Shown: one piece after another, positions 35,115-63,695 of the stretch
Layout: each line of letters begins with the position of its first letter
How positions within the stretch are numbered: position 1 is the first letter of the stretch
From: Oculina patagonica
Lineage: Eukaryota
Assembly (NCBI RefSeq): GCF_052425735.1
Contig: NC_135759.1
Coordinates: 28,024,001-28,088,000, forward strand
Length of the DNA: 64,000 nt
Reading direction: 5' to 3'
The notes under the pieces: generated by a model
Told to the model about the DNA's origin: nothing
Database searches by the model: none
Seen by the model: the letters and a program-made list of their open reading frames with translations, nothing else
Position numbers and translations under genes: made by a program

Positions 35115-36383
35115 TTATTTTTGTTTAACATGGTTGCACCTTCAAAAAGGCGGCAGAAATATGTTGATACCGATTGAGACCCTTGGGAACTCTTTTCCAG
35201 TTACAGTACAATTCAACATAAACTTACCTCTTGAGGAAAGTTTCGGCACGTCGATAGGCCGGGAAAAGATACCCTGGTGGAAGTATAAGCTGGCGCCGAT
35301 CTCCTTTCTCTTCCTTTTTGCTTTTACTTGCTTCTTTACCTGCCTCTGTGTATACAAGCATTAAAACTGACTTTACTTTAAATTCACTTAAAATGATCAA
35401 GTTCATAGACTGTGAGAAATGAACGATGCATTACCTTCATTGTCAATTGCAAAAATATCATAGTGATAATCACCGCATTCGGTGGTGTATCCACAGCAAC
35501 AGCAAGGCGTAACCTGACAAGGACATCCACATCCCGCTAATCCACAGCCACATGGTGTAGCGCAGCCACAGGATCCAACACAGCCGTTGCAGAGAGGATC
35601 CGAAAATCCACATCCACAACTGCAACCGCCTCCACAACCGCAGCCGCAGCTGCAAGGCTGAGCACATCCGCAGCCACACATCTGCTGACATCCACAGCAA
35701 CAGGGCTGTGCACAGGTGCAAGGGCATTCATGAGTGACGTGATGAACGTGATGCACACAACAATCGTGATGCACGCAACAGTCGTGATCGTGTTCGTGGT
35801 GATGACAGACGTCTTGATGACAACAACAGCAAGGCTGACAGCAGCAACATGGCTGACAACAACAGCAAGGCTGGCAGCAACAGCAGCAGCCACAGCAGTT
35901 GTTGTTTCCGGAATTTTTGTCACCGTTTTTATTATTATTATTATTTGTTCCACAGCAACAGCCACACCCACAACAATTATTGTTATTATTGTTGTTGTTT
36001 TCGTCCTCGTTCTTGGCAGCTGGTTTGTTCTGATCGGCCTGTGTCGTCTGCCGGGCAGGCGGTATAGCAGTCTGACTGGGTTGCTGACTTTGATTTAGCT
36101 TCTCGGGCTTATTTTGAGGTAAATGTTGCTGTGCCGCCGGTTTGATTACATCATGAACACTCTGTTGGTTTGGCAAAGACGGAGCTGAGTTAAAATTTTG
36201 AGAAGGCGCATTCTTTACCATTGGAGGTCCAAGTCGTAGACTCGGATTTCTCAAAACCTGGTTACCACGAGACTGAACACGGGGTTGTTGATTATTTCCA
36301 TACACCGGATTAGGAGCAATTGCATTGTCAGTTGTCAAAACGGCACTTAAGATAGCCAACATCCATATAGACAGAAATGCCAT
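35115..36383 (-). CDS. Secreted Gln/Pro-, poly-Asn-, Cys/His-rich protein (cluster gene 6, ~363 aa)
   Basis: Exon 36383-35435 (signal MAFLSIWMLAILSAVLT; Q/P-rich region; N-runs; CCCCQP x3; HHHEHDHDCCVHHDCCVHHVHH; CGCGC), exon 35345-35228 (DRR-QLILPPGYLFPAY-RR) and a probable last exon 35139-35115 (less certain). Confidence 0.82.
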
Positions 36384-37226
36384 TTCTGAGGATCTCAAAT
36401 GAATCGTGTGAAAAGTAGGATGTGCCAAATCACTTAAGTCAAATTGAAAAGGTGGGTAATAGCGCATTACCTCATAAAACAACCTGTTTAATCACTTCAA
36501 AAATCGCTTTAGCTCGTTGACATGTACTATTAGACAATAGAAACCTGACAGATCTACAAATCGAAAACAATACGATTTGTGGTTTTGTCAACACTAAGTC
36601 AATAAAAACGTTTAGAATTTGGTAGTTAATATATTGTAAGAAACGATGCAGGTACTAGAAGATCGTACGGTGGTGAGATGGTAAATCACTGCAGTTAAAA
36701 CATGTTTCAAAATTTTCAGTAGCCTTTACCTCTAGCAGGTCATGAGAACGAAAGGTTGTAACAGTGTAGAACTAAGAGATAAATCACACTCAGGAATTAA
36801 TTCCTTCGCGGTGAATTATCACGATATATGAAAACTAAGGAAAAAATTTTATACAGATCACTAAAAGGAAAGGTTTATTCTGCCACAAGTTAATTATCAA
36901 AAGGGAGTTAGCCTTTTGTTGGAAGAAGAACGCCAGTAAGCGATTAGCTAAATAGTTCTAACGTTACAATGTATGCCGCTGCACGATCAAACGAATATTG
37001 GAGTCCATTGAGATAACAGTGAAACTCTCGTTCTCCAGGTAAAATTTCCGTGCATGATAAATGAAGTACATCGTACGGCAGGTCTGACTGTTTTCATAAA
37101 ACAACGCCTGTTTGTAACCTAAAATACTGAACTGTTTTTAAGAAATTGACTTTTTATATAATTTTAGTTTCATCTACAAACTGTGATTTTCTAAAAAACC
37201 TCAGATTTTTCAAAGTAGGTAACCAC

Positions 37227-39762: not shown

Positions 39763-41946
39763 ATGAGGTTTTTACAACTTAAAGCGCAAGTTGCTGTCTA
39801 TCTTTCGCTTGTGCTATTTAATTTAGGCGTGGTTGAGAATCGTCAGGCTGCTCCCAGCACCCTTCTAGAGGCATTGAATATCACGAAGAACGAAGAAAAC
39901 AAAAAGAGTGGTCCATCTTCCAACCATGGCTTTCGAAACCGACGATTTCCTTCCAGCTTTTCATATTTCTCTAACTGTCCTTTAAAACAGGGAGTCGTAT
40001 TTCTTGGAGGACCCTGTGGTCCTATGAGAGCAACATGCTGTGGTGGGTTTGGTTGTGCTTCTGGAATTGGTTTCCCTATTTCGGCTGTGTGTTGTAAGTT
40101 ACTTTTGATTGTATTCCTTTTCTCCTAAAGCTGACAAATTAATCATCATTATACTAAATTGGTAATAGCACAATCATCATTATACTAAATTGGTAATAGC
40201 ACAATGTGTTCATGCTGTTAACGTTTATTTCAAAAACTGATATGTGTGCGATGCCAACCCAAGCCCAAGAATCCTACATCTCCAGATGCATACAAGACAA
40301 TAATACACCCGTATAGAGTAAAACGTCTCTTCAAGCGCACGTATTATGTTTATGATATGACTGAAAATATGTTTAGATTTATGAGTATTTTATTGTTTAT
40401 TGAATAAATTTGAAAATAAACTTCAAAATTTCAAGTGTTCGTGGCTACCGTAGTCTGACACAGTGTTTCGTCCCTGCCAGGCGACTCTTCAGAGACCTTT
40501 CCGCTTTCAATTTCCCGTTCGCAAGCATGTAATGATGGCAGCAATCTCGTAGAGAATTGCGCTCAAAGTCCCAACTGCACAAAATCGCGAGTGAAAATTG
40601 GCAACATTTTAACAGTGTAAATTTGAACGTGCCTTTTAATTGGAAATTCCTCATCTGGTAAGTATATGTATTAGTCAAGAATCATATCACGTTTAGCTTC
40701 ATTAGTTAATATATGACGGGAAGCGTTTTTTCTCTCCTGCCTTACATTGTCCTTAAATTTACTTTTTTGAATAGGTTCATGGACAAGTTGCAGGGTAGCA
40801 AGCCAATCAGGAAAAATAATAAACGCTGCCAAACGATTTGACATCACAAGCCTACCGGCAGCACACCCATCCGCAGTGTCCATAAAAAAACGACCAAAAC
40901 CCTCCAAAGACAAGCGCAAACATAATCGTGCAAAGCAGAAGAAAATCGACAAGGACTCGTCCAAGGAAAGCAAGGAAGGACCTAAGATAGACTTAGAGTT
41001 AAAGCTGAATGATGAGCCCAAGCCAACAGAACAAGAAGAGGTTGTTGTGGGCCAACCAATTCATCACAGACCATGGGTACCCTACATGCATAGACCCCTC
41101 TATCCGTTCCACATGCGGCATCGTCCTTATCACTTTTCTCATTATATGCCTCATAATATGAGGTTTTCACATCCCTCCTACTGGCGATTCCAGGGTTACT
41201 TTCCCCATTTTATGAGAAGGAGGGCTCCTTGGTATATGAACCCATCTGATGCAAGAAATATCCATCGCTATCCTGAATATCAGTTTGGGGATGTGCAGTT
41301 TGTACAGTCTGACCATCCTTTCAGGTCCAGACCACCTTTTAGAGATTATAATGATTTCAGCTCTGACGTTGAACTCCTAGACAAACCGGAAAAACTCCAT
41401 GAAGACTTCACGCACAGCAAAAACAAAATTAAAAGTCATAAAGAGTATAATCGGCTCCATGAACAAGACCGAAAGACGGTGGATGACTCAGAAGACGCAA
41501 AGGCAAACACATTTAGACCAGGCAGTTTAAGGCAAACAGAAGCTGGACGCATACAAGGAACAAATCCCGGAGTAATGGAAAACCAGCAGGTCTTGAATTT
41601 CAATCCCACGGAAAAGGAGGACGAAGAGACCAATTACCCTGAATACAAAAGCGAATTTAACACAGACAGATTCTGGTCTTCAGTTGATAAGAGGCAAGGA
41701 AAAGATAACAGCCAGTTTAGCTCCCATGAACCAGAAAGAGAAGAAAATGCAATATTTAGAGACTTTACGTCCGATGACCATGGATTTGATCTGGATGAAA
41801 TTTCTTCCTCCCATTCAAAAAGAAAAGAATCAACTAAGGAACGAGCGAAAACAAACAGAGTCAGCAAAGTCCGTTCTGGTGCAGGTGTTGTGAAGATAAA
41901 ATCTGATTCTCTTGACATCTCCAATGCAATAAACTCATTTTCTTAA
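39763..41946 (+). CDS. Secreted precursor with Cys domain and His/Pro/aromatic region (cluster gene 7, ~500 aa)
   Basis: Exon 39763-40093 (signal, RNRR site, Cys/Gly segment ending AVC-T/GTAAGT) spliced in phase 1 to exon 40775-41946, which is in frame with ORF 40876-41946 (Lys-rich; HHRPWVPYMHRPLYPFHMRHRPYHF...; acidic tail). Confidence 0.82.
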
Positions 41947-43002: not shown

Positions 43003-44657
43003 TTATATTGTTATCACTATTGTATTTTTGTTACTCTTTCGTCGTCCAGCTTGTTTAATAAGTCTTATCTTGTGTTTTGGAGGATGAAAACGAGCGGTTG
43101 GCGGGGACGTTGTGGGTGATTGTGCTGTGACAGCTACTAAGGTAGCTAGTGTACGTGTGGTGCCATAGGTAACCCGAGATGTCGAGCTAGCTTGTGTTCC
43201 CGTGGTAGACTGGCTACCTGGAGCGGGGCTGGTTGTCCCTATGGGGCTAGACGTTGTTGGTGCTTGAGGTGTAGTAGCTGTCAAAGTGGGTTGTGTAGTT
43301 TTCCCCAGGGTGGCGACACTAGTAGCCTGAGATGTTGGAGTGGTTTGCGTCTCTGTCGTAGGCTGACCTCCACCGGTGGGGCTGGTTGCCCCAGCGGGGT
43401 TTGACGTTGTTGGTGCTTGAGTTGTGGTAGCTGACAAAGTGGGTTGAGTGGTTGGCGCTTGGGTGACGACGCTGGTTGCCTAGTGATGTTGGACTTGTTG
43501 GTGTTTCTGTCGTAGGCTGACCGGTACCTCCGCTTGTGGGGCTAGTTGCTCCTACTGGGCTAGACGTTGTCGGTGCTTGGGTTGTAGTAGCTTTCGAAGT
43601 GGGTTGAGTGGTTGGCGGTTGAGTGGTCACACTGGTAGCCTGAGATGATGGACTAGTTTGTGTTCCTGTCGTTGGCTGACCCCCACTGGAGGTTGTCTCT
43701 GAGGGGTTAGAAGTTGTTGGCGCTTGTGTGGTAGAAGCTGACGAAGTGGGTTGAGTAGTTGGTGCTTGACTTGAGCCACTAGTAGCCTGAGATGTCGGAC
43801 TAGAAGTTGGTGGTGCTTGCGTTGGCTTGGCCCCAGGAGGTTCGGACCCCGGGGTTCCTGATTCTCCTTTGCCCACTCCACTGCAACCTATTTTTATTGA
43901 GTTAACAGAAAAATACGAGGTTTGCGGTAGTAGTGATTTGTCGATAATGAGTACTAGTACTGTTCGCGCAAATTGGTCACTTAGAGTGGCAAAAATAGAT
44001 GTAAATGATGTATTTTTTAAACTTGAGCGTGGCAAATATGGAAATGAAATACACCTTGATGAATAAATAGATTCTTACAATAAGAAACCCCATGAGAAAT
44101 GTTAAGTATTAACCTGAGTTATCGAAACCAAGTTCAGTTGTGAAATAAAACAAACAGCTCTTCGAGAAATACTTACTGCACCATTTTCCGCATCGGCATG
44201 GGAAGCAGGGAACGGGTTGATGCCATGTTCCAAATCTATGCATATCATAGGAGCCTTCCAAAGGGAAACCATATCCGTCCCTCCAGCCGTATTCCGGCCA
44301 CTGAGAATCAGGAGCTGAAGGCCACCATTGACTGGGATATTGGGAAGATATGGGATTTAATCTATAACCATAGATGTCGGTGAAACACCGCTTCGATAAC
44401 CAACGAAGTTTACCGGCTTTTTTACTTTTGGGGACAAAACCTATGATTTTTCGCTTGTTTTTACGGCTCGAAGGACCAAGCATATCAAATTTGAAAGCAT
44501 GGTTTAAGTGATGGTTACTTATGTCGTCTCTTAATTCATCTATTTCACTATCCCTGTCATCCGCGTCCTCTGCATCCCGATGGAATCTTAGCAAAGCATT
44601 CGATTGAAAGAGAACTGCTTGGAAACAAATGGTTAGCAAAAGCTTGCTGGAGTTCAT
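43003..44657 (-). CDS. Secreted precursor with Trp/Pro/Cys domain and mucin-like Thr/Ser/Pro tail (cluster gene 8, ~454 aa if one frameshift is corrected)
   Basis: Exon 44657-44177 (signal MNSSKLLLTICFQAVLFQSNA; SKR-CF; ends CFPCRCGKWC-A/GTAAGT) and exon 43887-43003 (TTQAPTTSSP repeats); one extra base at ~43482 joins ORFs 43319-44035 and 43003-43437. Confidence 0.8.
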
Positions 44658-46293
44658 TTTGCCCTGAGTTTTTCCCAACACTTTGTCTTATCGTTGCGAC
44701 TTATGATAATGACATAATGTTCGGATACATTTCTAGGGGAATATATATGACATCATTTTCAAATCTAAATAGAAAAATGGGAATTAAGCTGCAATGCAGC
44801 AACTAAAACAAGGAAAACAGAGGAATCCCGATGGAAAGTAAAATGAACTGCTCTGTGCATTGTAGCTCACCGCTATAACTAAAAAAGTGCCTCGGGATAT
44901 ATGAAGAAGTGGCATTTATGTTAGCGCTGCTTACCAGCTTTAATGTCAAACATAAACAGTTACGCCCCCTCTGATAGATCGCTTAAAGAGACAAAGAGAG
45001 GACTTGCTTGTTTCCATGGAATCCTTTACACGCTTCAACGGAGTTTTGCAAACGACCAATATCAGAAGTTTTCAAATGATTAGGTAAACCAAGTGGAGTT
45101 TGAACACTGATTTCCAAAACATAATTTGCGGCTCATAGAGTGCCATTGCCGTTTTTCCTTGTACCAATACTGATTAGTATTATGGCCGGATTAACAAGTA
45201 GTAAGCTCTTAGCATCGAACAACAGACGAATGTAAGTAAAATAAGCTTGTGCAATTTTAAGAGAGTTATAAAAGTTTGGATCATCCTCGAACTGTGTTGT
45301 GAATCTTTGACTAACTTGCTTTGTATTGAACGGACGCCAAATTCCTTCTCTGCTGAATTAAAACTATCAGGTCCGAAAGGCCAACCCCCGAGAAAGAAAA
45401 TATCCCGCTTTTCTTTGGCCCCTCTCCGTTTTTGACTCCAGAGAAACTAAATTTATCTCTTGTTATTTTGTACTTTGGAAGTGAGTGAGAACGAGCGACC
45501 GAGCTACAGCTCTAGTGAGTGGGGTCTCTTTCTCTAACACTGGCTCAAGTAGCTTCGTTTCCATTGTGCAATTTTTTATTTACCAATTGAATTTCCTTTA
45601 GTTAAGATCAAGTAAAATATTAAAATCATTTAAGCTTTTGTTATATTTTATTGTTTTATGCTTGTTCGTCTGTCGTACTTTTCCTTAAGTTTCTTTAGCG
45701 TATCATAAAAACTTTAAATAAGTTCTTTTACAAGAATAACCGCAAAATGCACTAGAAAAAACATTTGCATTATCGCTACATTTGTAAGCAAACTGGCGCT
45801 TAAATCCACGTTAATTACAAAGCAATAAGGCACAGCTTCTTGTTCGTTTCTTCTTGGTACCCGAGAGAGGGCTAATGAAGCCCTGGATCGCTGTGAAGAC
45901 TGAAACGCAAACTTTATAATTATGTTTCTTACAAACCTAACGGTGGTTTAATAATTCTTGGGGCATATTTTCGTGGCCCAGACCCTTGAAGCTATTCACA
46001 TTTTTTGTAGCCTTTCTCATGACCTCGAGTTCTCACAGTGGAAAGTTAACAACATTGAGTAAGATAGCCATGCAAATGTATTAGTTTATCTGAACTTTAA
46101 CGATTTCAATCAATGCAACAACATAGGCGCATCGTGGTAGATGAAAAGGAAGAATTAACAGTAAAAGAAATTTAGCCGATTATCTACGTGAGATAAGTCA
46201 TTTCCTTTTGGTTTCATTTTCTCGATATGCTGTTGGTGCTTTGCTGGTACATGTCAGCTCGAACCAAACACTTCTCTAAGCTGCAAGAAGCAA

Positions 46294-47562
46294 TTAATTT
46301 TTTTGTTTCTGTTTCTTAGTTGGTGTATTTTGCCCCTTTAATTTCCAAAAGAATAGACTACCCACAACTTGGTCAGCGGGTGACGCTTGCTGAGGAACTT
46401 GCCAGTTACCATAGGTTGCCTGGTAAGGATCATCGTAAACAGGGGGCGCCTCCGCAACATCTGGGGAAGCGCCGTACGTGATATCTTGGCGCTTTATTCC
46501 TCGTTGAACGTTGATGTTCTTTCCTTGTTTCATTTGAACTGGACCTTTGAAATTTGCTTGTTTTCCGACGAATGGATGAAGTTGTGATGGACCACCAACC
46601 TTATTTGATGTTGGTTGGCAAGGAGCAGCATCGTTGAACTGTGAACACTGATCACTGGCACCACCTCCTCCACCTCCACCTTCTTGACCACAACCTGATT
46701 TTTAAAGAAAAGAATCAGCAAGCACAGGAAAAAATATATTATTTCACAGAAAATTTTATTATAAGCTGTAACGCTATTCAAGTTGAAGCAATCTTCTAGT
46801 AACGTTACTTAGGCAGCGCACCGAGTTTGACAGTGTACATCAGCCTGTCCTCTGATAAGAGGAAACTGCTTGCTTGTTTTATTTCCAGTAAAGCAGGTAT
46901 TATCTTTATAGAGAAGGCTAGAAAGGCAAATAATTGGGAAAAAAAAAACAGTTGTCTGTCTAGGTAAAGCCTTATTTAGTTGTTGACATCTTCAATTTGA
47001 GTTCTCGTTTTGACACGATCTTGCAAAGAAGTTAACATTTTTTTCTAAACTTGTTAAGCTAATCATCAAAGCAGTCAACCAGTTGAGCGAATGACTTACA
47101 GCACCAGCCGTGGTTGTTACAGCCACAAGAGCATCCAGGCATTCTCCACGGCCCTCCACATCCGAACTGATTACATCCAAACGGACTTCCGTGTCCTCCC
47201 CAACCTCGATGAAAATTCGGTCCGTATTCCGGGTATAATGGACCTGGCCCCCATCCCCAGGGACGAGGCCAATCTAATAGGCTGTCTTCGAGCCCTACTG
47301 GACAATCATACGGAGAACCTAAGAAGCATCTTCTATTTTGGAACTTTTTGAAGTTTTTTTGCTCGCGTCTCCTTTTGTCGTTGATCTTGGTTCCGTCCGC
47401 TGAGTCCACGATTTTTCCTGTTTTACTCGGCTCTACGTTTGGCTCATCGTCAAGTGTTTCTCTTCGACTCCTCTTTAGGATTCCCTCAGTTTCCTCGGCA
47501 AGGGTGATAGTCAAACCGAGGAGGCACAAAAGTGTCAAATGGAATAACAACGAACCCGCCAT
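46294..47562 (-). CDS. Secreted precursor, RR-CF...WCC family (cluster gene 9)
   Basis: Exon 47562-47100 (signal MAGSLLFHLTLLCLLGLTITLA; KRSRR; NRR-CFLG; ends HGWC-T/GTAAGT) and exon from 46694 (C-CGQEGGGG...GIKR-QDITYG...). The 3' end is uncertain: either a donor at 46361 with a small last exon near 46280, or read-through to 46294. Confidence 0.82.
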
Positions 47563-48256
47563 ATTCTCAACTGACTTGCTGGAGAAAAGTTTCAAATTTT
47601 TCTGTAATTTTAAGTCATCTTAAGTTTGAGGTAAGATTTGTAAAAATAAAATCATCAAAGGAATGTTTTGACGATCAGCCATCCCCTCATTAACATTTCA
47701 AGACCTCAGAAGTTTCGTCTTAAGTGTCTCATTAGAGTACCTCAAGTCTATCATAACTCGTTTTAAGATATATTCAGACATTTTTTCTTGTTGCTTTAAG
47801 GCAAAAAATTCCTTTTATAAGTTTTAACCACGGAATAGCACCAAGACTTTATTTGTCGTCGATTCTTATGACCTGAATCAAACCTGATGGCTTGCTTGTG
47901 GTACTACTATAATCGCCTTCCCGGGAAACACTTAAACACACCCATTATGACATGTTTAATTATTTAACGGTACGTAAAAGCAAACATTTCTTGAAAATGA
48001 AAAACATAGTGAAATCTGAGAAGATGTTACTGATGAAGTGCCTTGTTCTTAAATGAATAAGTTGCACGAGCAGTTCGCCAAAGAAATCACCACAAGAAAG
48101 TACTAACAATCCATGATTAACGAAAGCACCAAAATGAAAATGTTTCTAGCCAAACGTTTGTACAGCTTCATGGCTTTGTTGGCAATATTTGTTCTCCCGG
48201 TCATTTAACCAAAGCCTAAGTGAGCTTAAATAAGCAAGCTAAGTCGTTAAGATAAG

Positions 48257-49552
48257 CTATCCATTGAGTTCTTTCCGGGCAATGTTAATGATAATACGGT
48301 CATTGACCTTTTGTTTGTGTTGCTGAGCATCTCTGAGTGGTTTAACAGCGTCGGACGCTTTGTCGTTTACTTTTTCGGTCTCTCCACAACCTGTAAAACA
48401 AATAAGACTTTTATTGTTTAGGCAATATTTATGATAATACGGTCACTGTTCCTTTGTTTTTGTCGATGGTTATGAGAGTCCATGCATTTGATTTGAATTG
48501 TTTTTTTTTTCCATTAGTACAACCTACCATAAGCTTCTACGATAAGTAACCACTTAGTCTGCGTTTTAGCTTAGGTTGGAGGTGGGAGCTTATCCCGTTT
48601 TTCGATTCCCCCCCCCCCCCCCTCCGGATCGGATGTTAATTTATCTCAGAGTCATATCCAGTATATTGGATGAAGAATACAGCACAATGGCCCAGGCAGG
48701 CACAAACCTGGACCGCTATATCCGGAGTCCAGCGTCGCCGTTTGCCTCTCTTTTGAGCAAAGATTTTTTCTTGTTAAATAGACACATACAAAATATGAGA
48801 AACTGATTAAAATTGGCATGCTTGTTGCACGAGTCCACTGTTGGTCAAAATAACTAAATTTCGTCTGCTGAGTAAAAGGTATACATCCACAGCATTCTTC
48901 GATATTTAACCACTTCACAAAACGTCAACTTTAAACATTGCGCGATCTAAAACAAAAAGCCTTAAACCAAGAACAACCAGAGTTTTAATAGTGTTCTTAA
49001 TAGTGGGTAGTGGTTTGCCAGTTTCAACTTACAGCACCATCCTTGTTGACCGCATGGATATCCACCCTGCTGCGGCCCTGTCTGACTATTGTCATTAAAC
49101 CTCTCCTTCCAGTTCCAACCATATGCATTTTGCTGTAGGTCGCCATCATACCTGTCCTGTACCCAAGCCCACTCATCTCCAACGTCGTATGGTGGCCCTT
49201 CTGCTGGAAAGTGAGGAGGCACTTGCGGACCGACTAATGGATCATTCCATTGAATCTGTGTCTCCAAAAATCCATCTGGGCAACCGGCGCCTGGTGAAAG
49301 CCCACAGAAGCAACGTCTTGATCGCTTACGACTGGCTGGTTTGGTTAGATGTTCGTCTAGCCTGTTGTGGAAGTGTTGATTGTTGTGGCCGGCTTCAATT
49401 GGCCTCGCCTCATATCTCTTGAAAGCGTGCTCACCAATTTCGAGTCTTCTTTTGATTTCCTGTGAACTTTGTTTCAAAGGATTGATGTTCTTTCCTTTAA
49501 TTCCAAAAGCAAGGGGGAAAAGGATAAACAATTGAAGCAGTAACCTGTCCAT
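48257..49552 (-). CDS. Secreted precursor, RR-CF...WCC family (cluster gene 10, 217 aa)
   Basis: Exon 49552-49033 (signal MDRLLLQLFILFPLAFG; RKRSRR-CFCG; ends QQGWC-T/GTAAGT) and exon 48390-48257 (C-CGETEKV...NG*). Confidence 0.85.
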
Positions 49553-50442: not shown

Positions 50443-51602
50443 TCAACGGAGAATATTTCGTCGAATCGTCAGTGGAGATGGGATATTTCTTCTCATTCTT
50501 CCGTCTCCTGTTGTAATGGAAAAAGATACATAACTGAGTCGCTTACATTGCTTAAGCAGTTTTATGTCTCGAAAAAGCTAAAAATCAGTTATTTTACTTC
50601 TTTAACCTGGAAACTATTGTCGCTTTCCCTAATATTGCTGACCCTTTTGAAATGAACAAAATCAGGCCAATACAAGCTAGACACCCAAATTAGTAAACAG
50701 CTAGGAACTGGAACACATCTTAACATGTAGTACCAGGGAGAGCCTCAAAATAGCAGTATTAAGTTTTAAATGTAAAATTTCGAAAACAAAGCCCTTTTCT
50801 TTATAAAATCCTTGATAGCAACCTGCTTCAATAATCGTGCTTAAAAATTATAATTCCTTTATCATATCAATTATCGAAACAAATTAATTCTCCAATTTTA
50901 TAATAAAGAAAAAATAATTGATATTTTTTTCAATTTTCAAATAAATTGTTTCCAATAGCTTTAAGAAAACAACAATTTTTTAAACTTACTCAGCCAAACG
51001 TGCTGAATATGCCCGTCGTTAAACAGACGCGGTGAACGTCGACCATAACCATTATGATGCATGAACCCGCCGCCATGAAATTTACATCCGCATCCTCCAC
51101 AACCACAGCAGCAACCTCCACCGCATCCATACTCCCCACAGCCGCACCCAGCGGCATCCAATTCATCAGCAGCGCCAACACCTCCAAAATCTCCATTACT
51201 GCCGCAATTACCACATCCACATCCACATCCACCACAACCACCAGAGTTTGAATTACCAACGTAGTCCCACGGAGACAGCCAGCCGGGAGGACATACCTGA
51301 GGATGGGAACGTTTTTTGGAATTATTTTCTCTATTTCCTTTTCTGTGGCTTTCGTTTTGATCGTCGTTACTTTCTTTCTCTTCGAATTCGCCATTTTTAG
51401 CAACATTATGAAGGTTTTCTTTATCGTGTTCAGATTTCAATGGATCCGTCTCGTCTTCGCTAACATCTTCGTGAATGCTTCGTACTGTGGATTCCATTTC
51501 TCCTTCGTAAATTGGCAGATCTATGTTTTCGCGGCCATGAGAAATCGTCATTTGGACAGAGAAAAAAATTACTAACACAGCATTTAGTGTAAAAACTTTC
51601 AT
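50443..51602 (-). CDS. Secreted Gly/Cys-rich precursor (cluster gene 11, ~225 aa)
   Basis: Exon 51602-50990 (signal MKVFTLNAVLVIFFSVQMTISHG; acidic pro-region; KKR; GCGGCGCGCG and GCCCGCGGCGC; phase-1 donor GTAAGT) and a probable last exon 50507-50443. Confidence 0.78.
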
Positions 51603-53771
51603 TTTGATAGAAAATGGCTCCTGACTTCTCCACTTCAAATAAATGTATTCGAAAATAAAACTCTCAAAAAGCAGGTGCCACTTTCATGCAGTAAGAATAT
51701 CCTCTATTGACCTCCCATTATGAAGGAGACAGATTTTGGTGATGTCACTGAGGCATGAAAAGTATCAAGGAAAACGTCTTTCTTCAATAAACCAAAACAA
51801 TTATAGCTGGTCTCCAACTCAAACTAATATTTTTGTCCTTCATAGAAAATAACAACCACTTTCTGAAGAATTTAAAGAAAATAAATCAAGTTTATCCATT
51901 TTGATAAAATCATGGGTGTGGTTTGCTTTCTGGTACCATTGCGATGCTATTGTTAAATTATAATAAGTTACCCGAGGCCGAAAGCCAATAGCCATAATAT
52001 AATTTTCGTACTTGAAACTGTGATGTCTCCAGTTCGAAAAACTTACATCGGATTTGTAAATTCTACAAGAACGAGCGCGTCTTATATCAAAAGATAAATA
52101 TGTCATATTGCGAGTTTATTTATCCGGTTCTGAAGACTTTTCGGGCTTGACAATAGCACAGTCTTTTCACTTAATATAGCCGAGATTAGCAAACGCCAAG
52201 AAATCTACTATCAGGAACAAATAGCTGAAAATTTGTATTTTTGAATCACGAGTTACTCAAGTATAATTCTCATTTTATTTTTACTGCACTGGATTCGATG
52301 CGCAAAAGTATCAGATGTACAACAAAGGACGGTTGATCAAACAAAAAAGGATCATTTCTTCGTACTGCCTATAAATTCAATTCACGGGATCTGCAAATAG
52401 GACATCGTATCTACTGCTTTAAAATATACTGTTATCGTATTATACACAGAAGTGTCTACTGAAACATGAAACAGTGCAAATACCCTTACGTCCTCCGGTT
52501 ATAAGCTATTGGCTTAATGTGTTGGTTTACTTACAGGAAAAGGGCTTCTATTTTTCGTGAGGGGTGGGGGTATAAATGCTATCAGAAAAGCCTTAGATGT
52601 GTACTGAGGAATAATAAAGATACGCAAGATACCTTGCCATTTTCCGTCTTTGATTTTACTTTGACATGAAATCGATCATTTCAGTCACTACATTTCGAAC
52701 AGTAACAAACTTCTAACTTGCAGTTAAAGATAAATCGAATATCCGGTGCATGTGATTTCTAGTAAATATTGTTCACTAGCCCAAAACAACTATACTCTAC
52801 TTGCATTATTTTTCCCACCAATTTATTAATGCAATTTATCGACAACTTTGTGTAAGGACATAAGGACAAGTGGGGCTCTTAGGCCATGGGGCTTGCAACC
52901 GAAATTATTTTTTGTAAGCTAAGCGGAAAGGTTCGAGAAAGGTGGGTTAACTGAATATCGGTTAAATGCGGGTGTTGGGGGGAAGATACAGAAAATATTT
53001 TATACGTACTAAGTAGGGTATGACGTCAGTCAAAGTAAAATAAGGGCTTGTTTAAGCCACCAAAATAGAAAAGCTTTCCATAAACAATATAACACCTTTT
53101 TGATAAGAAGACTAAATTCTCACTTGTTGAACAGTTTTAGCTAAATCAAGTTTATAAAGGATATATTAAAAAAATTGTTATTTTATTATAGGAACCTTCA
53201 AGTCGTGACTGAATCCTTCATGTGTGACATATATTTACAAAAAAGTTTCAATTATGCTCTAAGAAACATTTTCTCTGCTTGATTGGCCAATGGAAAGTGA
53301 AGACGCGTGTTCACCTTTTTGTTTTCGACATTATAGTCTTTGAGCTCAGAACAAGATGTATCGATAAAGACTTATCAATTTAAAACCATCCTGTACGTTT
53401 GGTAACTTGACCTGTTTCAAAAGTAATCGTTCGACGATCAAGTGGAATATTTCCTTTACTGAGAGCTTGTACGCAAATTATTTATCCCTTTATGCAATCA
53501 TCGTACAGGACAACAGGAAAGTGGCTTCAGTTATTTTCATACAATTCATCTTTATTTATCAAACCACGATTCTATTAATTTACATTACAGACTGGTTAAA
53601 CAGCTCGGTTATCAAGCTGAGAGAAATATATTAACACACCTGCATGGTTTTTGAATATGGATACATAGTGCTTTTATAATTGCCTTTAATTTTCGTGAGG
53701 TCGAACGCCTATGTATTCTTGTTCTGCTAAATTGAAGTCTTTTTTACAAACCTTTATACCTTTTTTTACAA

Positions 53772-55656
53772 TTAATGAATTTTTGACAGTGGCTGATGCA
53801 CTTTTGGAGATGCTTGAGGAAAAAGAGGTTTATCCTTTTGAACTTTATCTGGTTTTTGCTGTGGGAGGTCATCTTCTTTACCTTCAGCATCTTTACCGTT
53901 CTTCTTACAACCTGGTGAGAACCAAAACGCAACAATCAACAAAGAAGTAGGAACTTCGTATAGTAGCCTTCGTTTTATACTGAAGGGAAGGGTGGCGAGG
54001 GTTAACGTGAACGTATCGTTTTGTTTGGGAGTGCTCTGGATAATTCCCACTAATTTCCCTTCGCAGATCTAGTATCTATTTTCTCCACATCATCTCAGAC
54101 CAGGTGTTAAATTTGTTACACATCTAAGACCGGAAATAAATTGACATTCCAAATGCGACTAACTGAAAATATTTTAAATCTCAGGTTAAGAGAAGGAAAG
54201 TAAGTCCCCATCTCAGCCATCCTGCCCTATCCAGCAGTGAATACCCGAAAGGAAATTTGATCGTCCCCCCCTTCCGCTAGGTTCGTTGTCCTTCTCAAAG
54301 GAAACACGCTGCATGCTAGAACAGCGCGGTAGCAAACATTTCTTGTGCGATTTTGTATTTAATACCAAATAGAAACAAATAGCACAAAATTGCAAAGTTT
54401 GAAAACAACAGAAAACAGTGACAGAAAAAGCCTTCCATAGCTTCCAAAATTGTTCCGCCAGTTCTTTTTTTTTTTTTACAATGGATTTTAAATTTAAAAA
54501 TATTGAATTGTTTTTGTTTGTTTGTTTGTTGTTTGCTTGCTTGCTTGTGTGTCTATGTCTCACTTTTTTTTGTCCCTTTTGATAGTTGCCACGCCGCTTG
54601 CCGTATAATTATCAAAATTTATTCCAAATAATAATTATTTTGGACCCAGACTAATGATTGTTAGTGCTAAAGCTACCGGGTTTTGTGTTTGCATGCTTGT
54701 ATTGTGGAAGAATTTAATTATCTTATGCCTAAGTATTAAAACACGTTACTTACAGCACATCATAACAGGCGGGTATCCACAGCCCCCTCCGCAACCACAT
54801 CCACCACACCCACCACACCCACCACACCACCACATCCACCACATCCACCACATCCACCGCATCCACCAAATCCGCCAAATCCACCAAATCCACCTCCGTA
54901 TACGGGATGTCCTACTCCGTACCCACCATAACCACCCAAGCCATAAGGTGGTACCATACCACCGAAGCCTCCACATCCTAGGCCAGGCCAGCCACCACCG
55001 AAGCCACCACATGGTACGGTGTAAGGTCCACTGCAGCCGATCACCTCAAATGAGTGCGCAGGTCCGCAAGGAAATGGGCACATACATCTTCTCCTGACCT
55101 TTTTCATGCGGTTGACAGGAGGTTCAAGTGGCGTTATCTCGATATTTCCAGGCGGACTTGCAAAATCCAATGAAAATGGGTCTTGCTTTACCTTTACCTC
55201 TTTCTGGGATGGGTTCTGCGAGCCCGGGGGTTGCAATGCAGTTATAGTGAAAGGTCCTTGGATTCCCATTGCATTTTGCATCTGTAGTTCTTCCGTGTCG
55301 GAATCAGATTTCTTTTTACTTTTCGATCGGTCACGTTTTGGCGAAGACTTCTCCTCTTTTGTCTCACTATCATCTTCATCTTCGTCTTCTAAGTCATCAC
55401 CACTAGAATCCTTAATCTTTTCCTCATCTTCGAGTTCCATGTACACGTCTCTCTTTTGTCTCGTTCGCGGCTCCTCCGTGGTACTTCCATCTTCTTCGTC
55501 TTCATCATCAGTTTCACCAGAATTTTCTAACTCATCGTCAACATCAGGTTTATCTCCGTGCCTGGAAGTTGGGTCGCCTTCGTCTTCTTTGACTGGCTTA
55601 GCTGGTGTCAAAACGAACGCAAACAATAGGACAATTAACACAAAAACGGCCCTCAT
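53772..55656 (-). CDS. Secreted Gly/Cys/Tyr/Phe-rich precursor (cluster gene 12, ~347 aa if one frameshift is corrected)
   Basis: Exon 55656-54754 (signal MRAVFVLIVLLFAFVLTPA; very acidic pro-region; VRRR-CMCP; GGFGG, GGYGG and (CGG)n; ends VMMC-T/GTAAGT), with one base missing at ~54826 in the GGATGTGGT repeat; exon 53911-53772 (C-CKKNGKD...IH*). Confidence 0.8.
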
Positions 55657-56090: not shown

Positions 56091-57009
56091 CTGAATTGAA
56101 TGAATTCTTATTTGACTGAATTGAGTCATTACCTTTTTGTTTCAATTCGTTCTAAGTTTAAAAAAATAGGTCGCATTCAAAAACAATAACGCAAATGAAA
56201 ACTATAAAGCCTATTTCGTTATTTGCGTGGATATTGAATTCAATCGCGTTTCTTGTAAGCCATTGAACCAAAAGTAAAACATTCTCTCCAGTTGTTAGCT
56301 TCTGTAATGAAATATTGCTTGTTGCGGAAAAACTTCTTATACGCTTCAAAGCAGGAGAGGCAACGGTTGGGTAGCTTACAAAGGGTGCATTCTCATAGAC
56401 AAAGCGTAGGACTACTGAGTCCTAAACACTCATATGGCTGTCATAAACTTCCGTTTAGTTTTCAGTTTCATTTGCTACTTTATTTCCTCTTTTATTAAAT
56501 TAACCTTTTTGTCTATATGGCTGCGTTGTGTGAATCATTTATTTCAAGGTTGCGCGAATGAAAGACCTAACAAGAATTGCTGGTTACTGACAAATTGTCA
56601 ACATGGTGGTAGAAACGGTTGGGTGAATTTGAAATCTCTTTTTACCAATATTTTTTCTTTTCGTATTGAAAATGCACAAACAAAACCTATAAAACATCTT
56701 TCCCTTACATTAAAGTGTTTTTAAGAGGAAGTTTTTAACAGAAGCCATAACAAATCAATAATTTATTGCCAATAAATCAGAAATTCTTTTAGTAAACAAG
56801 ACAGGCTGCCTTATGAACCTGCACAGGCACAAATTGACCAATAGCAGAGGCGCTAATTTTTTATTGAACAAGTGAGGCCTAATGCCACGTTAAGTTGGTT
56901 ATTCTACGCTTACCAACAAAATCCTAAAAACCGAAGGGTTTTGAAGTAGCTTCTTCATCGAGGCCTTCAATTTCAAATTGGAAGCCTCTAGAAGAAGTCT
57001 TCAGCTACA

Positions 57010-60000
57010 ATGGCGAAGGTATCATCAAAGATATTGATATTTCTCGGATTCCTTTGCGTTTACATATACGGATCAAAAGGTAGACCATACAATCTCGACG
57101 ATGTAACTGCAGCGGAAGATCAAAACAAATTTGAAGAAAGCGATCTGTTGAAAAGATCAAAGACTGGCAGTGGCGGGCAAGACAAAGGTATGGAATTCAT
57201 TCGACACTAATTCGGATAAATTGAAAAAATACTACATCGTTCACGGTTTGTTTGTCGCCTTATGAGTCTCACCTGCAAGTAATGTCTTTAATTAAGAAAC
57301 GATATAGGTCAAGAAATTGATGGCTGATATTGCTATTATATATAAAACTAGTTGTAGGTTAAATTTCCCATTATGATATATATTTTGTCAAAATTGAACC
57401 ATCTTTCATTGTTTTCGGTCAACAAAATACACTAAGGCCATTGCTTTAATTACATTCTGGAATTATTTGTGAGGTTTCTCTAGTCTGATTTTAGATGCAT
57501 CTCTCCGACAAAGCTAAAGGAATTGCTTGTTCTTTTTCATAGCAAACATAAATGATCTACTAAGACACTGATAAAAATTTGAAATGAAATTTGTCATGGC
57601 GGTAATAAAAAGAGGAGTAAAAAATACGGTTGTGTGTTTTTAGAAGCAAACCCACATAATTCAGTAGTTTTCGTGCAAAATAGATGAGATTAACTAACGA
57701 TCGATCGATATTTTTTTACGTTTAGATAAATGTTAGCAAAACCAAAACTCGGTCTAAAACGCACTATTATATTTTGATATAACTAAGGACAAGAAAAAAG
57801 ACAATCTGCGAACTGCATTGAACACAATAGCCACCTGCAATAGGTGTCTTACAATTAGCGATCAGGTTCAAAGGAGAGGGTGGCTGTTTTCAAGAAGTCA
57901 GGTTAGCTTAAACTGGTTCAATGATTTTTCGTTGGATGTTTTTGTTCGTCTAAATTACATCAGTCGCAAACTTCGCAAACCTAAGCGAAGGAAAATAAAC
58001 TAAAAATACTGACAACATAAACATATTTATAGAGCATATTTCCACCTTTCAAAATTAAGTGTCAAAACTAGTTTTTATTTAAACAGTCGATGAGATGACG
58101 TTTCCAACGTCTTATCAGAAACCACCGTAAGACCTTAATTCTCCTATTTTAAACTGCTTTTCTCAATTAATTAATTATGCCCCTATGTGTATATCAAATA
58201 AACACTGCCAGTGTTTGAAGATAATATTAAAAGTAGCACTCTTCTTATTTTCAGGCCACAAAGAATATAAGGGAAACAAAAAGCAAGTCATAGATGCCCT
58301 CCATCTTGGTCCCTACCACCACGGGCATCCATGGGGCACTATATCACAGTGGCCGGGTTTTCACTGGGGCGGCCACCCATCGCGTCACGGAGGGTGGACC
58401 GGTTATCCATCACTTGGAGGATGGCACAAATCTCACATTTCCAAAAAGAACTCTAAAAAATCTGCGCACAAAGCAGCTTTGAAGCGTCATATGCTTCCCA
58501 CGTTTGCCTTCCCGACTTATGGATTCGCCTACCCCTCCTTAGGGTTTGCTGCCGTGCCATTCACTCCCTCACCTGTTCCCTGGGGTTACGCAGCATACCG
58601 TTCCAAAGTTCCTGCAAAGTCAACAAAAGGACAAACCAGGTCTTCAGTGAAGGGCTCTGAGGCGAGCAAGAGATGGTGGCCTGGATATATGGGGGGATGG
58701 GGTGGTTGGGGATTAGGAAATGGAGGATATCCCGGATGGGGTCCTTTAGGCGACTGGGGACATGGTTACGATTTTGGTGGCTTTGGTCACGGATGGGGCA
58801 TAGGTGTTGGTAATAGCTTTCATCCTTTTTTGAGAGCTGAAATTCCTGGAAAACTAAGCAAGAAAGATAAGGCCCAGAAGCGTTGGTGGCCTGGTTACAT
58901 GGGTGGATGGGGAGGTTGGGGCTTAGGAAACGGTGGTTATCCTGGATGGGGACCTTTAGGTGATTTCGGGGGCCACGGATGGGGTGGATACGGTTACGGG
59001 CACGGACTCGGATTAGGTTATGGTTACGGGCATGGATTTGGATATGGATATGGACACGGCCACGGTTTCCGCTCCAATGTTCCTGGTACCGAAGACGGAG
59101 AGGAAGAAGGCCCAAAACGAGGATTTATAAACCAACCATTCGGAGGTGTTGGCAACCCATGGTATGACTACGCGCCATTTGCAGACTATGACTATCCTTT
59201 CTTTGGCCACAGCCAATACATTCCTTATCCAGAAGCACTGTACGGGGATTTCTTGCCATTTTATGGGTTAAGTCCGTACGCAGCAGGTCCTTTTGGATAC
59301 GGGTTCAATGGAATCAACGGTTTTCATGGAGGACATGGCTTTTTTAAATCAAAAATCCCCACAGGCAAATCTAAGAAAACACAAAAAAACAAAGAAGAAG
59401 GAGCCACCAGCCGGCACTTTGTTCACAATTTTCATCCTGGTCGAATGGGCTGGGGAGGAGCCATATACCCCGGTCACGGGTACCACGGTGTCTTTCCTTT
59501 GTTAGGCGCTCACACTTACGGCCTTTATGGTGCAGGTTTTTACGGTCCTTATGGACCTCCGCACGGGGCATTTGGTCCGTACCATAGGTCAGACGTCCCC
59601 GAACATGAAGAAGAAAGCACCCAGAGTAGACAAGTGATAAACTATAATCCTGGTTGCTGTGGATGGGGTGGATGTAATTATCCTGGTTGTGGCTATATCG
59701 GTGGGTGGACCTGGCCCTTACCATGCCATTTCCACCACTGCGGTTGTTGCCCATGCTGGACACGTTCCAAAGCCCCCAAAAAGCAAGAACTGAAAGAGGA
59801 GAAAGGAAAGTCTAGACAAGAAATTGAAAGTCCGGGAGAGGGCGAAAGCAACGAGGGCAAATCAGAGGACCCGAGAACACGTCCTCACCTTGAGGGTGCC
59901 GACTTGTTGCAATCAGAGATGCAGAATCTGGCCATGGGGTTTCCTGGGATTGAAAAACTGCACACGCCTATGGGTCTGACGAACCCTGAAGGTCAAGAAT

Positions 60001-62359
60001 CCCAGAGTTTCAGTGACCAAGAAAACCAAGAAATGGAATCTAATGAGCAAAATTCGTCACCTGAACAAGCCTTGGCTCCTGCAACTATTGCTGCTATGAC
60101 AGGAATGACCCCAGAGGAAGGAAATGGCTTCAGAGCGCCCTCACAAGGAAACATGGAGGAACAACAAGAAGGCCAACAACAATCTGCTGGTGATTTAATG
60201 TCCAGCTTCAATATGAGTCCTTCGAATGAAGGCGAAGCACAGGTTGAATCGTTTGGTGAAACAGGTGAGCTGATTGCGAAAGGCGCTTTCTTCCATGAGG
60301 GCGTGATCTAGATATTTGTTATTAACACTCTTTCACCTTCTTTTGTAAGGAAATCCAAACATGTACGCTACGGGAGCAGAAGAACAAACCACGGAGTCTG
60401 CCTCGCGCAGAGCTGATATTCCCGGCCAGACGGAGGGAGATCTAATCAAGAAACAGGCTGTCGCATATCCATATCATTACCTTTACCCTGGGTATGCAAT
60501 GGCGCACGGAATCAACCCATATTACCACTTCGCGCCCATAAATTATGTAAGGCATACATTGTGACTTAATTCCCCTTAAGCACCATAGTCTCATAACCTA
60601 GTTCGCAGTCGATCTTCCACTAAGGGTTGTTTCTTTGTACAAGGAACTTGATTACGTACACAGATTATGGACTTGTCTGTTTATTGATTGACCCTTCTAG
60701 TTCGAGTCATAGCAATACAATGTAAGACTGATTATTTCATCCAGTATAAACTATAGGACACCCGAAGGTGAAAATATCATACACGTACTGCTATTGGATT
60801 TGACGTAATCTTTCTTATCTGTTGCTGTTAATTAAATTGTGGGCATTCAGGGGGAGGGATGGTCGTGTTAAGCACCTGAGGTCGGATTTCAAGAGAGCAA
60901 TGCATCTACGTATTTCCTAGACTGTTTAAGTGGGGCTGTTCCAGGAAACTTATTGGGAGGCTCGTTGGCCTATTGGTTAGTGCGCTGGACTCCGGATCGA
61001 GCTTTCTGGGTTCGAGCCCCGGCCTGGCCGGGCACTGCGTTGTGTTCTTGAACAAGATACTTTACAACCATAGTGCCCTTCTTCACTTAGGTGTATAAAT
61101 GGGTACCGGCGAATTTACTGCTGGGGTTAACCCTCCCATGGACTAGCATCCCATCTAGGGGAGAGTAAAAATACTCCTAGTCGCTTCATGCTGCTGAAAC
61201 CGGGATAAGCGCCGCCCTGATGGGCCACTAGGCTCATATGCAGAATTTGCCTTAACCTTTTCATATTAATTACTTTTAAATGTTCTGTCTTGCTAGTTAC
61301 TTTATAATACTTCTCAAGTGGCAAGTATTTGCAGCTATTGTTGGTATTGCTGTGTTGTGTTTGTGTATGTTTTTTTTAGTACCCTTTGCCTTGAAGGATT
61401 CCACTGTGAATTTGAGCTCTTGTTTGTCTGTCTGTCTGTCTGTCTGTCTTCTGTTGTCTGTCTGTCTGTTGTCTCTGTCTCTGTGTGTCTGTCTGTTGTA
61501 AATAAAGTATCCTCACTCTGTCTGTCTGTCTGTCTGTTTGTTTGTTTGTTCGTTTGTTTGTTTGGCTGACCAAAACCTGTAGACGACAGAGTTAATAACC
61601 AGTGAATTTTACGTTTCCTTGTTTTTTAACACCCCTTTAGGCACAACACCTGATGCAGTACCCTTCAGCTTACCCACTGGCACACGCTGGGTTTGCTCCA
61701 CAAGCATTAGCAGCATACCATGATCATCCCACCCACTCCATTCACGTGGGAGCACCAAATGTCAATGTCGATGTTCACACGACACGGGAACATGTTGCTC
61801 ACCACTTTGAAAAACAGGTAGGATGTCGTTTTGCATGCAATGTGCTTTAATAATTTGTTTATTGCAAAGTACTATGATCGAGGTATTTAATCTTGTCTTG
61901 TTTCATGATCGACTCAAATAGCTGCTGCGATGTGCCCAAAAAGTGTTAGAAATTTTATCTCTTTATCGGTTTTACATATCTTACATCCCGTTCATATTAA
62001 ATAACATCGAGACCAAAGCGTTACGGAGAGTTAAATTACTTTTTTGCATCTCCCAGTAACTGAAGATTTTGGCTGTTGGCAAACTTGCAATCAGATTAAC
62101 TTAACACGGTCCTTGGAGCGCACGCACTGTTTTAATATTTACTTTCCTTATCGTCTCACTTTTTTCTCACTACCTTTTATTTCAGAAAGGAGGCAAACTA
62201 AAAGAACTGGTGGGACAGTTTTCAGAGAAGTTGAAATTCAAGAATAAACACAGGCAATCTTCCCATAAGAAGAAAGTGACGAAAAGGCAGATACCTTCGT
62301 TTATGTCTCCAGCCATGAACCGACAAATGGGATTTGCACCTGCTCTTAGGTCTATATAA
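57010..62359 (+). CDS. Secreted multi-module polyprotein precursor of Gly/Tyr/Trp/His/Pro-rich peptides (cluster gene 13, ~911 aa)
   Basis: Exons 57010-57187 (signal MAKVSSKILIFLGFLCVYIYG), 58255-60264, 60350-60546, 61641-61817 and 62186-62359; all GT-AG with matching phases (1,1,0,0) and an open 2736-nt frame. Confidence 0.87.
60955..61260 (+). mobile_element. tRNA-derived SINE (intronic)
   Basis: Head TGGCCTATTGGTTAG...GGTTCGAGCCC; body homologous to the 13230 and 14007 copies. A degenerate copy lies at ~48560-48735 (-). Confidence 0.82.
61420..61565. repeat. (TCTG)n/(TTTG)n microsatellite
   Basis: Direct reading. Confidence 0.85.
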
Positions 62360-63695
62360 CTAAACATGATGTTAAAGTAATTATTAACTTCGTTAAAACA
62401 AACACAACACCGTTGCTTGTCTTTTTTGACAAAATTGCAAATGAGCAGTTGAAAAATACTTATAATACTTGACTTAAAAAGTAAAGTAAAAACAAGAGCA
62501 TACAATCTTTTATGAGGCGTTAAAACATGTTTCTTTCAATCACGTTGATGTAATTTTATAGATAATTAAATGCCATTAAAATGCCTTCAAGACTGATATT
62601 TCTCTCAAACTGTCTTGTGCAACGCTCATAAGCAGTACGTAAACGTTTTCGATAAAAAGGCATGTGTTAGTTTGGAAAGTTTTGGCAAGCATGATGAAAA
62701 TTCAACTCATTAATATTACATGCATTTCATATCAACGTGTTAGATTATTCAATATACACAATATCTTCTTATAAAATAGTTTTAAAATTGCGAGAAAGGG
62801 AATGCCTCATGCCGCTCTCAATCGAAAACATTTACAATGTTTCCCAGTTCCAAGTGCAAGGAGAACAAAAAAATTCCCAGATCAGAATGTCCCTGGGGCC
62901 ATAAACCATTTGTTACAAGGTCTCGTCCGGCATTTCCACAAGGACACCCAAAACCAGTGCGCATGCGTCATTCCAATTCTCGCTGTAAATACGCATGCTC
63001 AATTGAGTCAAATGTTGGTGCACTTGAATATGACAATATAGTCCCACAATAAACGAACACCATCATTCAGCTTGAAAGAGACGAAGTTTCTGAATGCGAC
63101 CGAAGAAAAGGCAAATGCGGAAGAAAAATCATGAATAATATATCGCCTTGAAAAATCATAGAGTACTGTCAATTGTGCACATGCTTGTAACACGATCTTT
63201 TTTTTTTACCCAGTATGACAGTTACTCGGTGAAAACCCTTTCCATATTACTTATGCAATTCATTGGAAGCAAAGGTTTAAAGGACATGCTATTTTGAAAT
63301 TAGTTTCCACTGCAATTCAACTTTAGTTTTCTCTCAGAGAGCGATACTGAAAGAGAGCGATACTGAATGTCATGTTTCCACGGAAACAACGGATCCAATG
63401 TCAAATTACACAGTTCACCTCCATTTGACTCAACAGTATATTGGCAAATTGCTTATGTTCCTCACCCCTACCCTTTCGTTGTAGATACCCAGTCCCCAAC
63501 ACTGCAGGCCTCCTGGGAGGAAGGTAAGTTGCTGTTCAAATTTCTCATCACAATTGTCGCCAAATGTTCGTTTGTTCTTGTTTGACCTACTGATGACCTT
63601 TCATAATGCAATTGTCAGAGTTACCCACAAATGATAAAATTTGCACGGTTCTAGTTCCGGCTTTCCTTGAAAAAATATGAAACAAGAATTAGCTA

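Follow-up and report, generated by a model that had tools for sequence, protein, structure and literature searches.

Baramicin A of Drosophila has been described as a "protein operon", i.e., a precursor that is cut at basic sites, in which N-terminal Gln is converted to pyroglutamate and which yields a Gly-rich product of 96 amino acids (aa), IM24 (PMC8423362). In cnidarians, peptide processing uses KR, RR or single R as sites and the N-termini are protected by pyroglutamate (pGlu) or X-Pro; the neuropeptide precursors of these animals consist of short, near-identical copies, with Gly always before the basic site and no basic residues on the N-terminal side of the unit (PMC7523074). The histidine-rich beak proteins of squid carry GHGLY/GHGxY repeats and phase-separate, the criterion being four repeats in tandem, or two with a spacer (PMC6884462). 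Here, we report on a gene of the coral Oculina patagonica that lies at 57010-62359 on the + strand of a 64-kb stretch of genomic DNA (contig NC_135759.1, positions 28,024,001 to 28,088,000; the whole stretch is called the window below). Its protein product alternates Gly/Trp/Tyr/His/Pro-rich modules, nearly without Lys or Arg, with short Lys-rich spacers. From its sequence, we favor, on balance, the interpretation that this is a secreted, intrinsically disordered polyprotein that is processed by a convertase and gives rise to products with pyroglutamate caps. The described design that appears to come closest is that of Baramicin A.

Gene structure, modules and the boundary motif

A sequence-only reading of this region had proposed a polyprotein that releases about 10 different peptides, and what it observed there was confirmed: the region holds a spliced, transcribed gene with alternating modules and spacers. 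All exon borders are GT..AG, and joining 57010-57187, 58255-60264, 60350-60546, 61641-61817 and 62186-62359 gives a 911-aa open reading frame (ORF). The RNA evidence, which consisted of contigs assembled from two runs of this organism, supports all four introns, and its coverage was confined to the exons. At the third joint, the RNA alignment placed the junction 4 bases leftward with a single mismatch and the same skip length as the GT..AG placement; because "tta" fits either side, this agrees with the canonical site. The parts of the transcript are as follows.

56917..57009, + strand: 5' untranslated region, minimum extent (RNA contigs start at 56917 and 56931)
57010..57187, + strand: exon 1, with the start codon, a hydrophobic signal-like N-terminus and an acidic pro-region closing in LLKR (joint 57187/58255 in RNA; conserved in orthologues)
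58255..60264, + strand: exon 2, 670 codons, modules M1-M8 plus spacers (RNA coverage; 15 orthologues, 51-83% identity)
60350..60546, + strand: exon 3, with the end of the acidic module, boundary motif 8 (RADIP, 60409-60423), KK and the start of M9 (ORF and RNA)
61641..61817, + strand: exon 4, the remainder of M9 with a conserved HSIHVGAPNVNVDVHTTR stretch, then REHVA (ORF, RNA and orthologues)
62186..62349, + strand: exon 5 up to the long-form donor, with a Lys-rich spacer, KR and the start of M10 (joint 61817/62186; loose RNA ends at 62349 in both runs)
62350..62359, + strand: short-form read-through codons, SI, and stop (RNA depth; orthologue transcript P0013 ends likewise)
63485..63523, + strand: exon 6, long form (AG/GT borders; the RNA loose-end sequence maps here and matches the "RYPxxN" stretch of orthologues of 1260-1294 aa)

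The gene had been taken to end at 62359, which proved not to be so. In each run, an RNA contig departs from the genome at 62349, immediately before GT, and continues at 63485-63523 (39 bases); beyond this exon, ~580 further transcript bases fall outside the window. The "RSI" that had been counted as an instance of the boundary motif is intron read-through at this same donor. RNA depth past the stop reaches ~62600 in one run, and a short form ending in RSI and the stop therefore probably exists alongside the long form. The latter is predicted to comprise ~1260 aa and more modules than the 911-aa ORF. In the orthologues, ~350 extra residues, rich in Pro/Ser/Met/Ala/Gln, follow the same Arg ("YPxxN..."), and this extension holds a spacer, "RKKRS...TKR/QFLA" (here and below, a slash within a motif marks the putative cut), and a final motif, "KKSSVP", ahead of a basic tail. 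At the other end of the protein, residues 8-20 are hydrophobic and are followed by GRP, as judged by inspection; the same arrangement is seen in corals and in a sea anemone, and would direct the protein to secretion.

The module starts and end motifs listed in the earlier reading were found in the 911-aa ORF, which is laid out as follows (protein residues; all encoded on the + strand).

M1: residues 70-117, 48 aa, 0-1 Lys/Arg
M2: residues 138-174, 37 aa, 0-1 Lys/Arg
M3: residues 200-252, 53 aa, 0-1 Lys/Arg
M4: residues 270-331, 62 aa, 0-1 Lys/Arg
M5: residues 349-423, 75 aa, 0-1 Lys/Arg
M6: residues 447-503, 57 aa, 0-1 Lys/Arg
M7: residues 519-562, 44 aa, nine Cys
M8: residues 581-749, 169 aa, acidic
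M9: residues ~765-843, ~79 aa, His/Tyr/Pro-rich
M10: from residue 889

Modules M1-M6 contain 20-48% Gly, apart from M2 with just 8%, and 30-37% Trp/Tyr/Phe/His. Low charge, which had been ascribed to most of the modules, indeed characterizes most of them, but M8 (QEIESP...) has a net charge of -26. The spacers are 16-25 aa long, with at most 8 Lys/Arg each. At the start of every spacer stands [RK]-[SA]-x-[VI]-P or a sequence close to it, and at its end the KR, KK or SR that precedes every module, which then begins with Gln, Trp or His.

In the protein, the motif in its strict form, [RK][SA].[VI]P, occurs 6 times, compared with a mean of 0.05 and a maximum of 2 in 20,000 shuffles. When preceded by an aromatic residue or Leu, it was found 5 times in all six frames of the window (128,000 residues), each time in exon 2. 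The copies encoded by this exon are listed here.

58428..58442, + strand: boundary motif 1, degenerate KSHIS (RSHIP/KSHIP in orthologues P0007 and P0015)
58599..58613, + strand: boundary motif 2, RSKVP
58833..58847, + strand: boundary motif 3, RAEIP
59070..59084, + strand: boundary motif 4, RSNVP
59346..59360, + strand: boundary motif 5, KSKIP
59586..59600, + strand: boundary motif 6, RSDVP
59763..59777, + strand: boundary motif 7, variant RSKAP, which follows the Cys-rich module (R, S and P invariant in corals)

KSHIS and REHVA, which had been read as instances of the motif, do stand at boundaries, but they are degenerate copies, the first of which reads RSHIP in some orthologues. Across 19 sequences of the family, the motif is present at every boundary in all lineages. 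Lys and Arg make up 2% of the 25 residues that precede it versus 26% of the 15 that follow, and in 70 of 92 cases it is directly preceded by Tyr, Phe, Leu or His. Where the spacer ends, the module behind the basic site starts with Gln at 43, with Trp at 32 and with His at 15 of the 113 boundaries, against a Gln background of 3.8%; this excess of Gln agrees with cleavage and subsequent capping as pyroglutamate.

An N-terminus that resembles a signal peptide, basic sites that recur and units that start with Gln, together with the very strong conservation of some modules (see below), would also be expected of a preprohormone for signaling peptides, i.e., neuropeptides or hormones, and the protein further resembles cnidarian preprohormones in its many units and in the putative use of KR/RR/single R and pGlu or X-Pro. 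However, we regard this identity as very improbable. No G[KR] stands at any module end, as the sequence-only reading had noted of the Gly-K/R amidation signal; the last residue of a module is instead aromatic, with [RK]-S behind it. The basic pair is located N-terminal of the unit, whereas cnidarian neuropeptide precursors show the opposite arrangement (PMC7523074). Moreover, the units are long (37-170 aa), of low complexity and different from one another. Where three or more highly similar short copies would be looked for, only the two WWPGY modules described below are alike. An amidated cnidarian neuropeptide precursor was thus rejected on two defining tests, namely the lack of Gly before the basic site and the length and dissimilarity of the units.

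Conservation in corals and sea anemones

A search of 5.8 billion clustered proteins returned 15 coral orthologues with 51-83% identity plus weaker matches, among them P0017 (992 aa) from the sea anemone Actinostola. When 1.84 billion representatives were searched exhaustively with a profile, 11 proteins only were retrieved, indicating that the family is narrow, and word-index protein searches gave no further named relatives. The family is transcribed in many coral data sets and, judging from the sequences recovered so far, appears confined to stony corals and sea anemones. Most of the orthologues listed here carry the C-terminal extension.

Acropora millepora LOC114965354: 1294 and 1127 aa, continues past the same Arg
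Porites lobata orthologue: 1281 aa, continues past the same Arg
Acropora palmata and Acropora muricata orthologues: continue past the same Arg
Transcript-contig orthologues: 1262-1266 aa, continue past the same Arg
Orthologue transcript P0013: 919 aa, with a read-through end, as in the short form in the window

Searches of Pfam with all exons, the full-length orthologue P0084 and P0027 matched 0 families, and a PDB sequence search gave nothing significant (best match, E = 2.1). In the literature, which was searched with peptide strings and accessions and for coral antimicrobial precursors, spirocytes and spinalin, anemone adhesion and coral peptidomics, the family was not reported. The gene, although shared with sea anemones, seems to lack an earlier description, having no name, no domain and no literature.

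Loss of the motif in orthologues had been named as a refutation of the sequence-only reading, but motif, basic pairs and module order all persist from corals to the anemone, in favor of that reading. Module order is kept in the Actinostola protein and in contigs P0016, P0018, L001 and L003. In the anemone and the distant contigs, the motif takes forms such as YKSKIP, LRSGIP, YRSSIP, YRSEIP and CRSNTP, the junctions KR-WWPGY, SR-Q, RR-Q and KK-Q are retained, and the Arg of the closing basic pair is kept. The identities of the individual elements, given as mean pairwise values among corals, were as follows.

Basic pairs at spacer ends, overall: 0.92
Basic pairs at spacer ends, four KR sites: 1.00
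Motif at module boundaries: 0.71
Modules, overall: 0.69
WWPGY modules, first 27 residues: 0.87-0.92
M1: 0.84
M7: 0.83
Spacer cores: 0.57

It had been predicted that modules and motif would be conserved and spacers not. The expected ranking was observed, but weakly, the spacer cores being moderately conserved themselves. Between the window and the RNA contigs, we counted 20 silent and 14 replacement changes; replacements made up 0 of 8 changes in M6 and M7 and 5 of 6 in the acidic module, in what is a small sample.

The strongest conservation was found in a peptide that occurs twice.

58668..58754, + strand: 29-residue KR+WWPGY peptide, first copy (protein identical to the second copy)
58878..58964, + strand: 29-residue KR+WWPGY peptide, second copy (coral mean pairwise identity 0.92; nearly unchanged in anemone protein P0017)

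All 29 residues are identical in the two copies, while 13 codons differ, all of them silently (proportion of silent differences, pS, 0.74). Silent divergence that is saturated alongside an identical protein excludes recent gene conversion, and shows strong selection on the peptide directly after KR. In the coral orthologue P0015, one fused WWPGY module stands in place of the two, showing that module number changes by whole units. A 27-residue Gly/Trp peptide that is nearly unchanged between coral and anemone suggests a precise molecular function, and its composition makes it a candidate natural phase-separating or surface-active peptide.

Two more distant sequences depart from the coral pattern. 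In Actinostola P0017, the Cys-rich module is expanded to a long CGG/CGGG run ahead of a conserved "CRSKTP" boundary. L002 (P0025, 171 aa, a transcript contig) is a distant relative in which "FFRSNVP...SKR/W" leads into a Gly/His/Trp module, followed by "KRGRAKR/QLLPAQF..."; it ends in "AQGRK", a possible amidation signal that is absent from the coral genes.

Proposed processing and competing interpretations

Architecture and conservation fit a polyprotein, so that the interpretation offered by the sequence-only reading is partly supported. That reading also supposed that the charged spacers might keep the modules in solution until they are cut apart. Under the processing that we favor, a convertase-type protease would cut behind each KR, KK or SR after removal of the signal peptide, freeing at least 10-12 module N-termini, and those that start with Gln would cyclize to pyroglutamate. 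A second cut, at aromatic-[RK]/[SA]-x-[VI]-P, would take out the Lys-rich spacer, and trimming by a carboxypeptidase would leave modules without Lys or Arg. As the known processing of cnidarian peptides suggests, S-x may be trimmed away up to [VI]-Pro after the cut behind [RK], which would leave the spacer X-Pro-capped and the module pGlu-capped. The predicted products are neutral Gly/Trp/Tyr/His/Pro-rich peptides, one Cys-rich and one strongly acidic peptide, and cationic spacer peptides. For these, an extracellular role seems most likely, either as a material that self-associates or as a mixture for host defense. We infer cutting at the basic sites because a fixed Arg or Lys precedes each module, with Gln the commonest next residue, and because Lys and Arg are kept out of the modules and a second, position-fixed motif is found across the spacer. 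Also in line with processing are the basic pairs as the best-conserved element, the identity of the two WWPGY copies behind KR, the change of module number in whole units, the lack of a predicted fold and of Pfam or PDB matches, and the neighboring genes, whose products likewise have pro-regions and multibasic sites.

Several known recognition sites were considered for this motif and rejected: an EB1-binding SxIP site, the protein being predicted to be secreted; a FAM20C S-x-E site, position +2 being Val or Ile; site-1 protease RxLx, which is in the wrong register; and furin RxxR, the P4 Arg being absent. One idea is that Pro at +3 of Ser would suit mucin-type O-glycosylation, which might gate the cut.

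A number of observations weigh against the proposed processing. The modules, at 37-170 aa, are long for released peptides and, as noted above, have no Gly amidation signal, and those in the C-terminal part of the long form, as seen in orthologues, do hold Arg. The spacer cores are not free to vary, and one has an invariant TRSSV stretch. Neither SR/Q nor aromatic-[RK]/S is a classical dibasic site. Under the rules that have been published for monobasic sites, a convertase is disfavored where P2 is aromatic and no basic residue lies upstream; this combination argues for a different protease at the motif. Finally, the literature search described above found no report of mature peptides from the coral polyprotein.

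Like Baramicin A and apidaecin-type precursors, the coral protein would be one secreted precursor with several peptides between basic sites. In Baramicin A, these sites are RXRR with almost no spacer, whereas the coral KR/KK/SR ends a 16-25-aa Lys-rich spacer, on the far side of which stands a second conserved motif. The two proteins have no sequence similarity, and the coral modules are neutral and far more conserved; furthermore, processing and immune function have been demonstrated for Baramicin, and the coral protein is compared with it from sequence alone. The shared design, with its basic sites, predicted pGlu ends and Gly-rich product of some length, nevertheless brings to mind a precursor that delivers a mixture of host-defense (antimicrobial) peptides, in the manner of Baramicin, apidaecin or the Gly/Tyr/Trp-rich NLP/CNC peptides of nematodes. 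A composition rich in Gly, aromatic residues and His does occur among antimicrobial peptides, released spacers would be cationic, and the gene is located within a cluster of genes for secreted Cys-rich peptides with pro-regions. However, the modules are neutral and not cationic, and several are nearly invariant across the coral-anemone split, whereas defense peptides usually evolve fast. Altogether, we consider a role in defense rather unlikely.

The main competing interpretation, which we hold to be less probable than processing, is that the protein stays whole, or is trimmed only at its ends, and serves outside the cell as a modular protein for matrix formation or hardening. In this case, the Gly/aromatic blocks would self-associate, and the Lys/Gln-rich blocks would be cross-linking sites for lysyl oxidase or transglutaminase, or cation-pi partners. 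Tropoelastin and loricrin are built in such a way, with Gly-rich or hydrophobic self-associating domains that alternate with short Lys (and Gln)-rich cross-linking domains. Consistent with this possibility, hydrophobic/Gly-rich and Lys-rich blocks alternate strictly in the coral protein, Gln is frequent within and next to the spacers, and the spacer cores are partly conserved. AlphaFold2 predicted no fold from 16 orthologues: mean pLDDT (predicted local distance difference test) was 28.5, no residue exceeded 50, and the one short helix was in the acidic module, a result that may reflect either disorder or too shallow an alignment. The language-model neighbors in the ESM Atlas hint in the same direction, as enamelin (0.75), cuticle protein (0.61), kappa-casein and fibroin are all secreted, matrix-type proteins, but their scores (0.5-0.75) are below the level of kinship and serve as leads only. 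In addition, the genomic neighbors are Cys-rich and Gly/aromatic-rich secreted proteins, recalling keratin-associated proteins.

What speaks against an uncut matrix protein is that cross-linking needs neither an invariant Arg at an exact position nor Gln, Trp or His after it, maintained across the coral-anemone distance, and that it gives no role to the five-residue motif at the opposite end of the spacer. A near-invariant 27-residue Gly/Trp peptide would also be unusual for sticker-and-spacer material domains. Tropoelastin and loricrin have neither an RSxVP-type motif nor an Arg at a fixed position with Gln or Trp behind it, and no homology to them was found. The squid beak proteins share with the coral protein a Gly/His/aromatic composition and predicted secretion and disorder, and module 4 ends in GYGYGHG-type repeats. 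However, they are not polyproteins with basic spacers, homology between the two was not detected, and GHGxY is absent from the coral polyprotein, the units of module 4 reading GHGxG. The pairing of a Gly/His-rich with an acidic part is also reported for Hydra spinalin, a Gly/His-rich cnidarian protein, as cited in PMC9205923.

A more specific version of the processed polyprotein can be imagined, in which the spacers are excision cassettes for two proteases, a convertase at KR/SR and a second, distinct endoprotease at aromatic-[RK]/S-x-[VI]-P. The Lys/Arg-free peptides, the acidic piece and the spacer peptides would together form a material specific to stony corals and sea anemones. It could belong to a capsule used for stinging or adhesion, or to a coat around the cell, and would be made jointly with the conserved neighboring Cys/Gly-rich secreted proteins. 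We put this forward as speculation, with little confidence. If the cuts do occur, the protein would be among the largest and most varied "protein operons" of an early-branching animal, one gene giving rise to a dozen different peptides in fixed ratio. The processing code would be two-sided, with a dibasic site and, opposite to it, RSxVP, and as such would be invisible to current cnidarian peptide-finding scripts, since those require Gly-basic sites (PMC7523074).

Genomic surroundings and intron 3

In the 35 kb upstream of the gene (22988-55725), genes are clustered whose secreted products are extreme in composition. In five of these products, a signal peptide is combined with a charged pro-region, a multibasic site and an end that is Cys/Gly/Trp/aromatic-rich.

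54760-55656 (to 55725 in the cluster as delimited above), - strand: head-to-head neighbor of the polyprotein gene, pro-region type; its mature part starts CMC(P/S)FPCG...EFEVIG after the basic site
50961-51638, - strand: secreted-protein gene, pro-region type
48962-49552, - strand: secreted-protein gene, pro-region type
47059-47595, - strand: secreted-protein gene, pro-region type
44109-44681, - strand: secreted-protein gene, pro-region type
43003-44035, - strand: mucin-like Thr/Ser/Pro ORF
40876-41946, + strand: His/Pro/Tyr/Arg-rich ORF
35403-36482, - strand: CCCCQP-repeat plus His gene
22988-23431, - strand: CC(H/D)-repeat gene

BLASTP of nine neighboring ORFs against the polyprotein gave nothing significant, and the resemblance is one of composition only. 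The head-to-head neighbor is homologous (E = 2e-14) to L001:2824-3765 (- strand), which occupies the same head-to-head place on the contig of a distant relative. This matching position indicates that the pairing is old and the microsynteny conserved, and it may reflect shared regulation.

Intron 3 contains two repeats. The element at 60959-61240 consists of a head that resembles tRNA-Arg(CCG) (60959-61030) and a repeat body behind it; RNA word depth across this element was 380-1000 versus 10-40 on exons, and it is probably a tRNA-derived short interspersed element (SINE) that is abundant in the transcriptome. A (CTGT)n-type microsatellite lies at 61415-61573.

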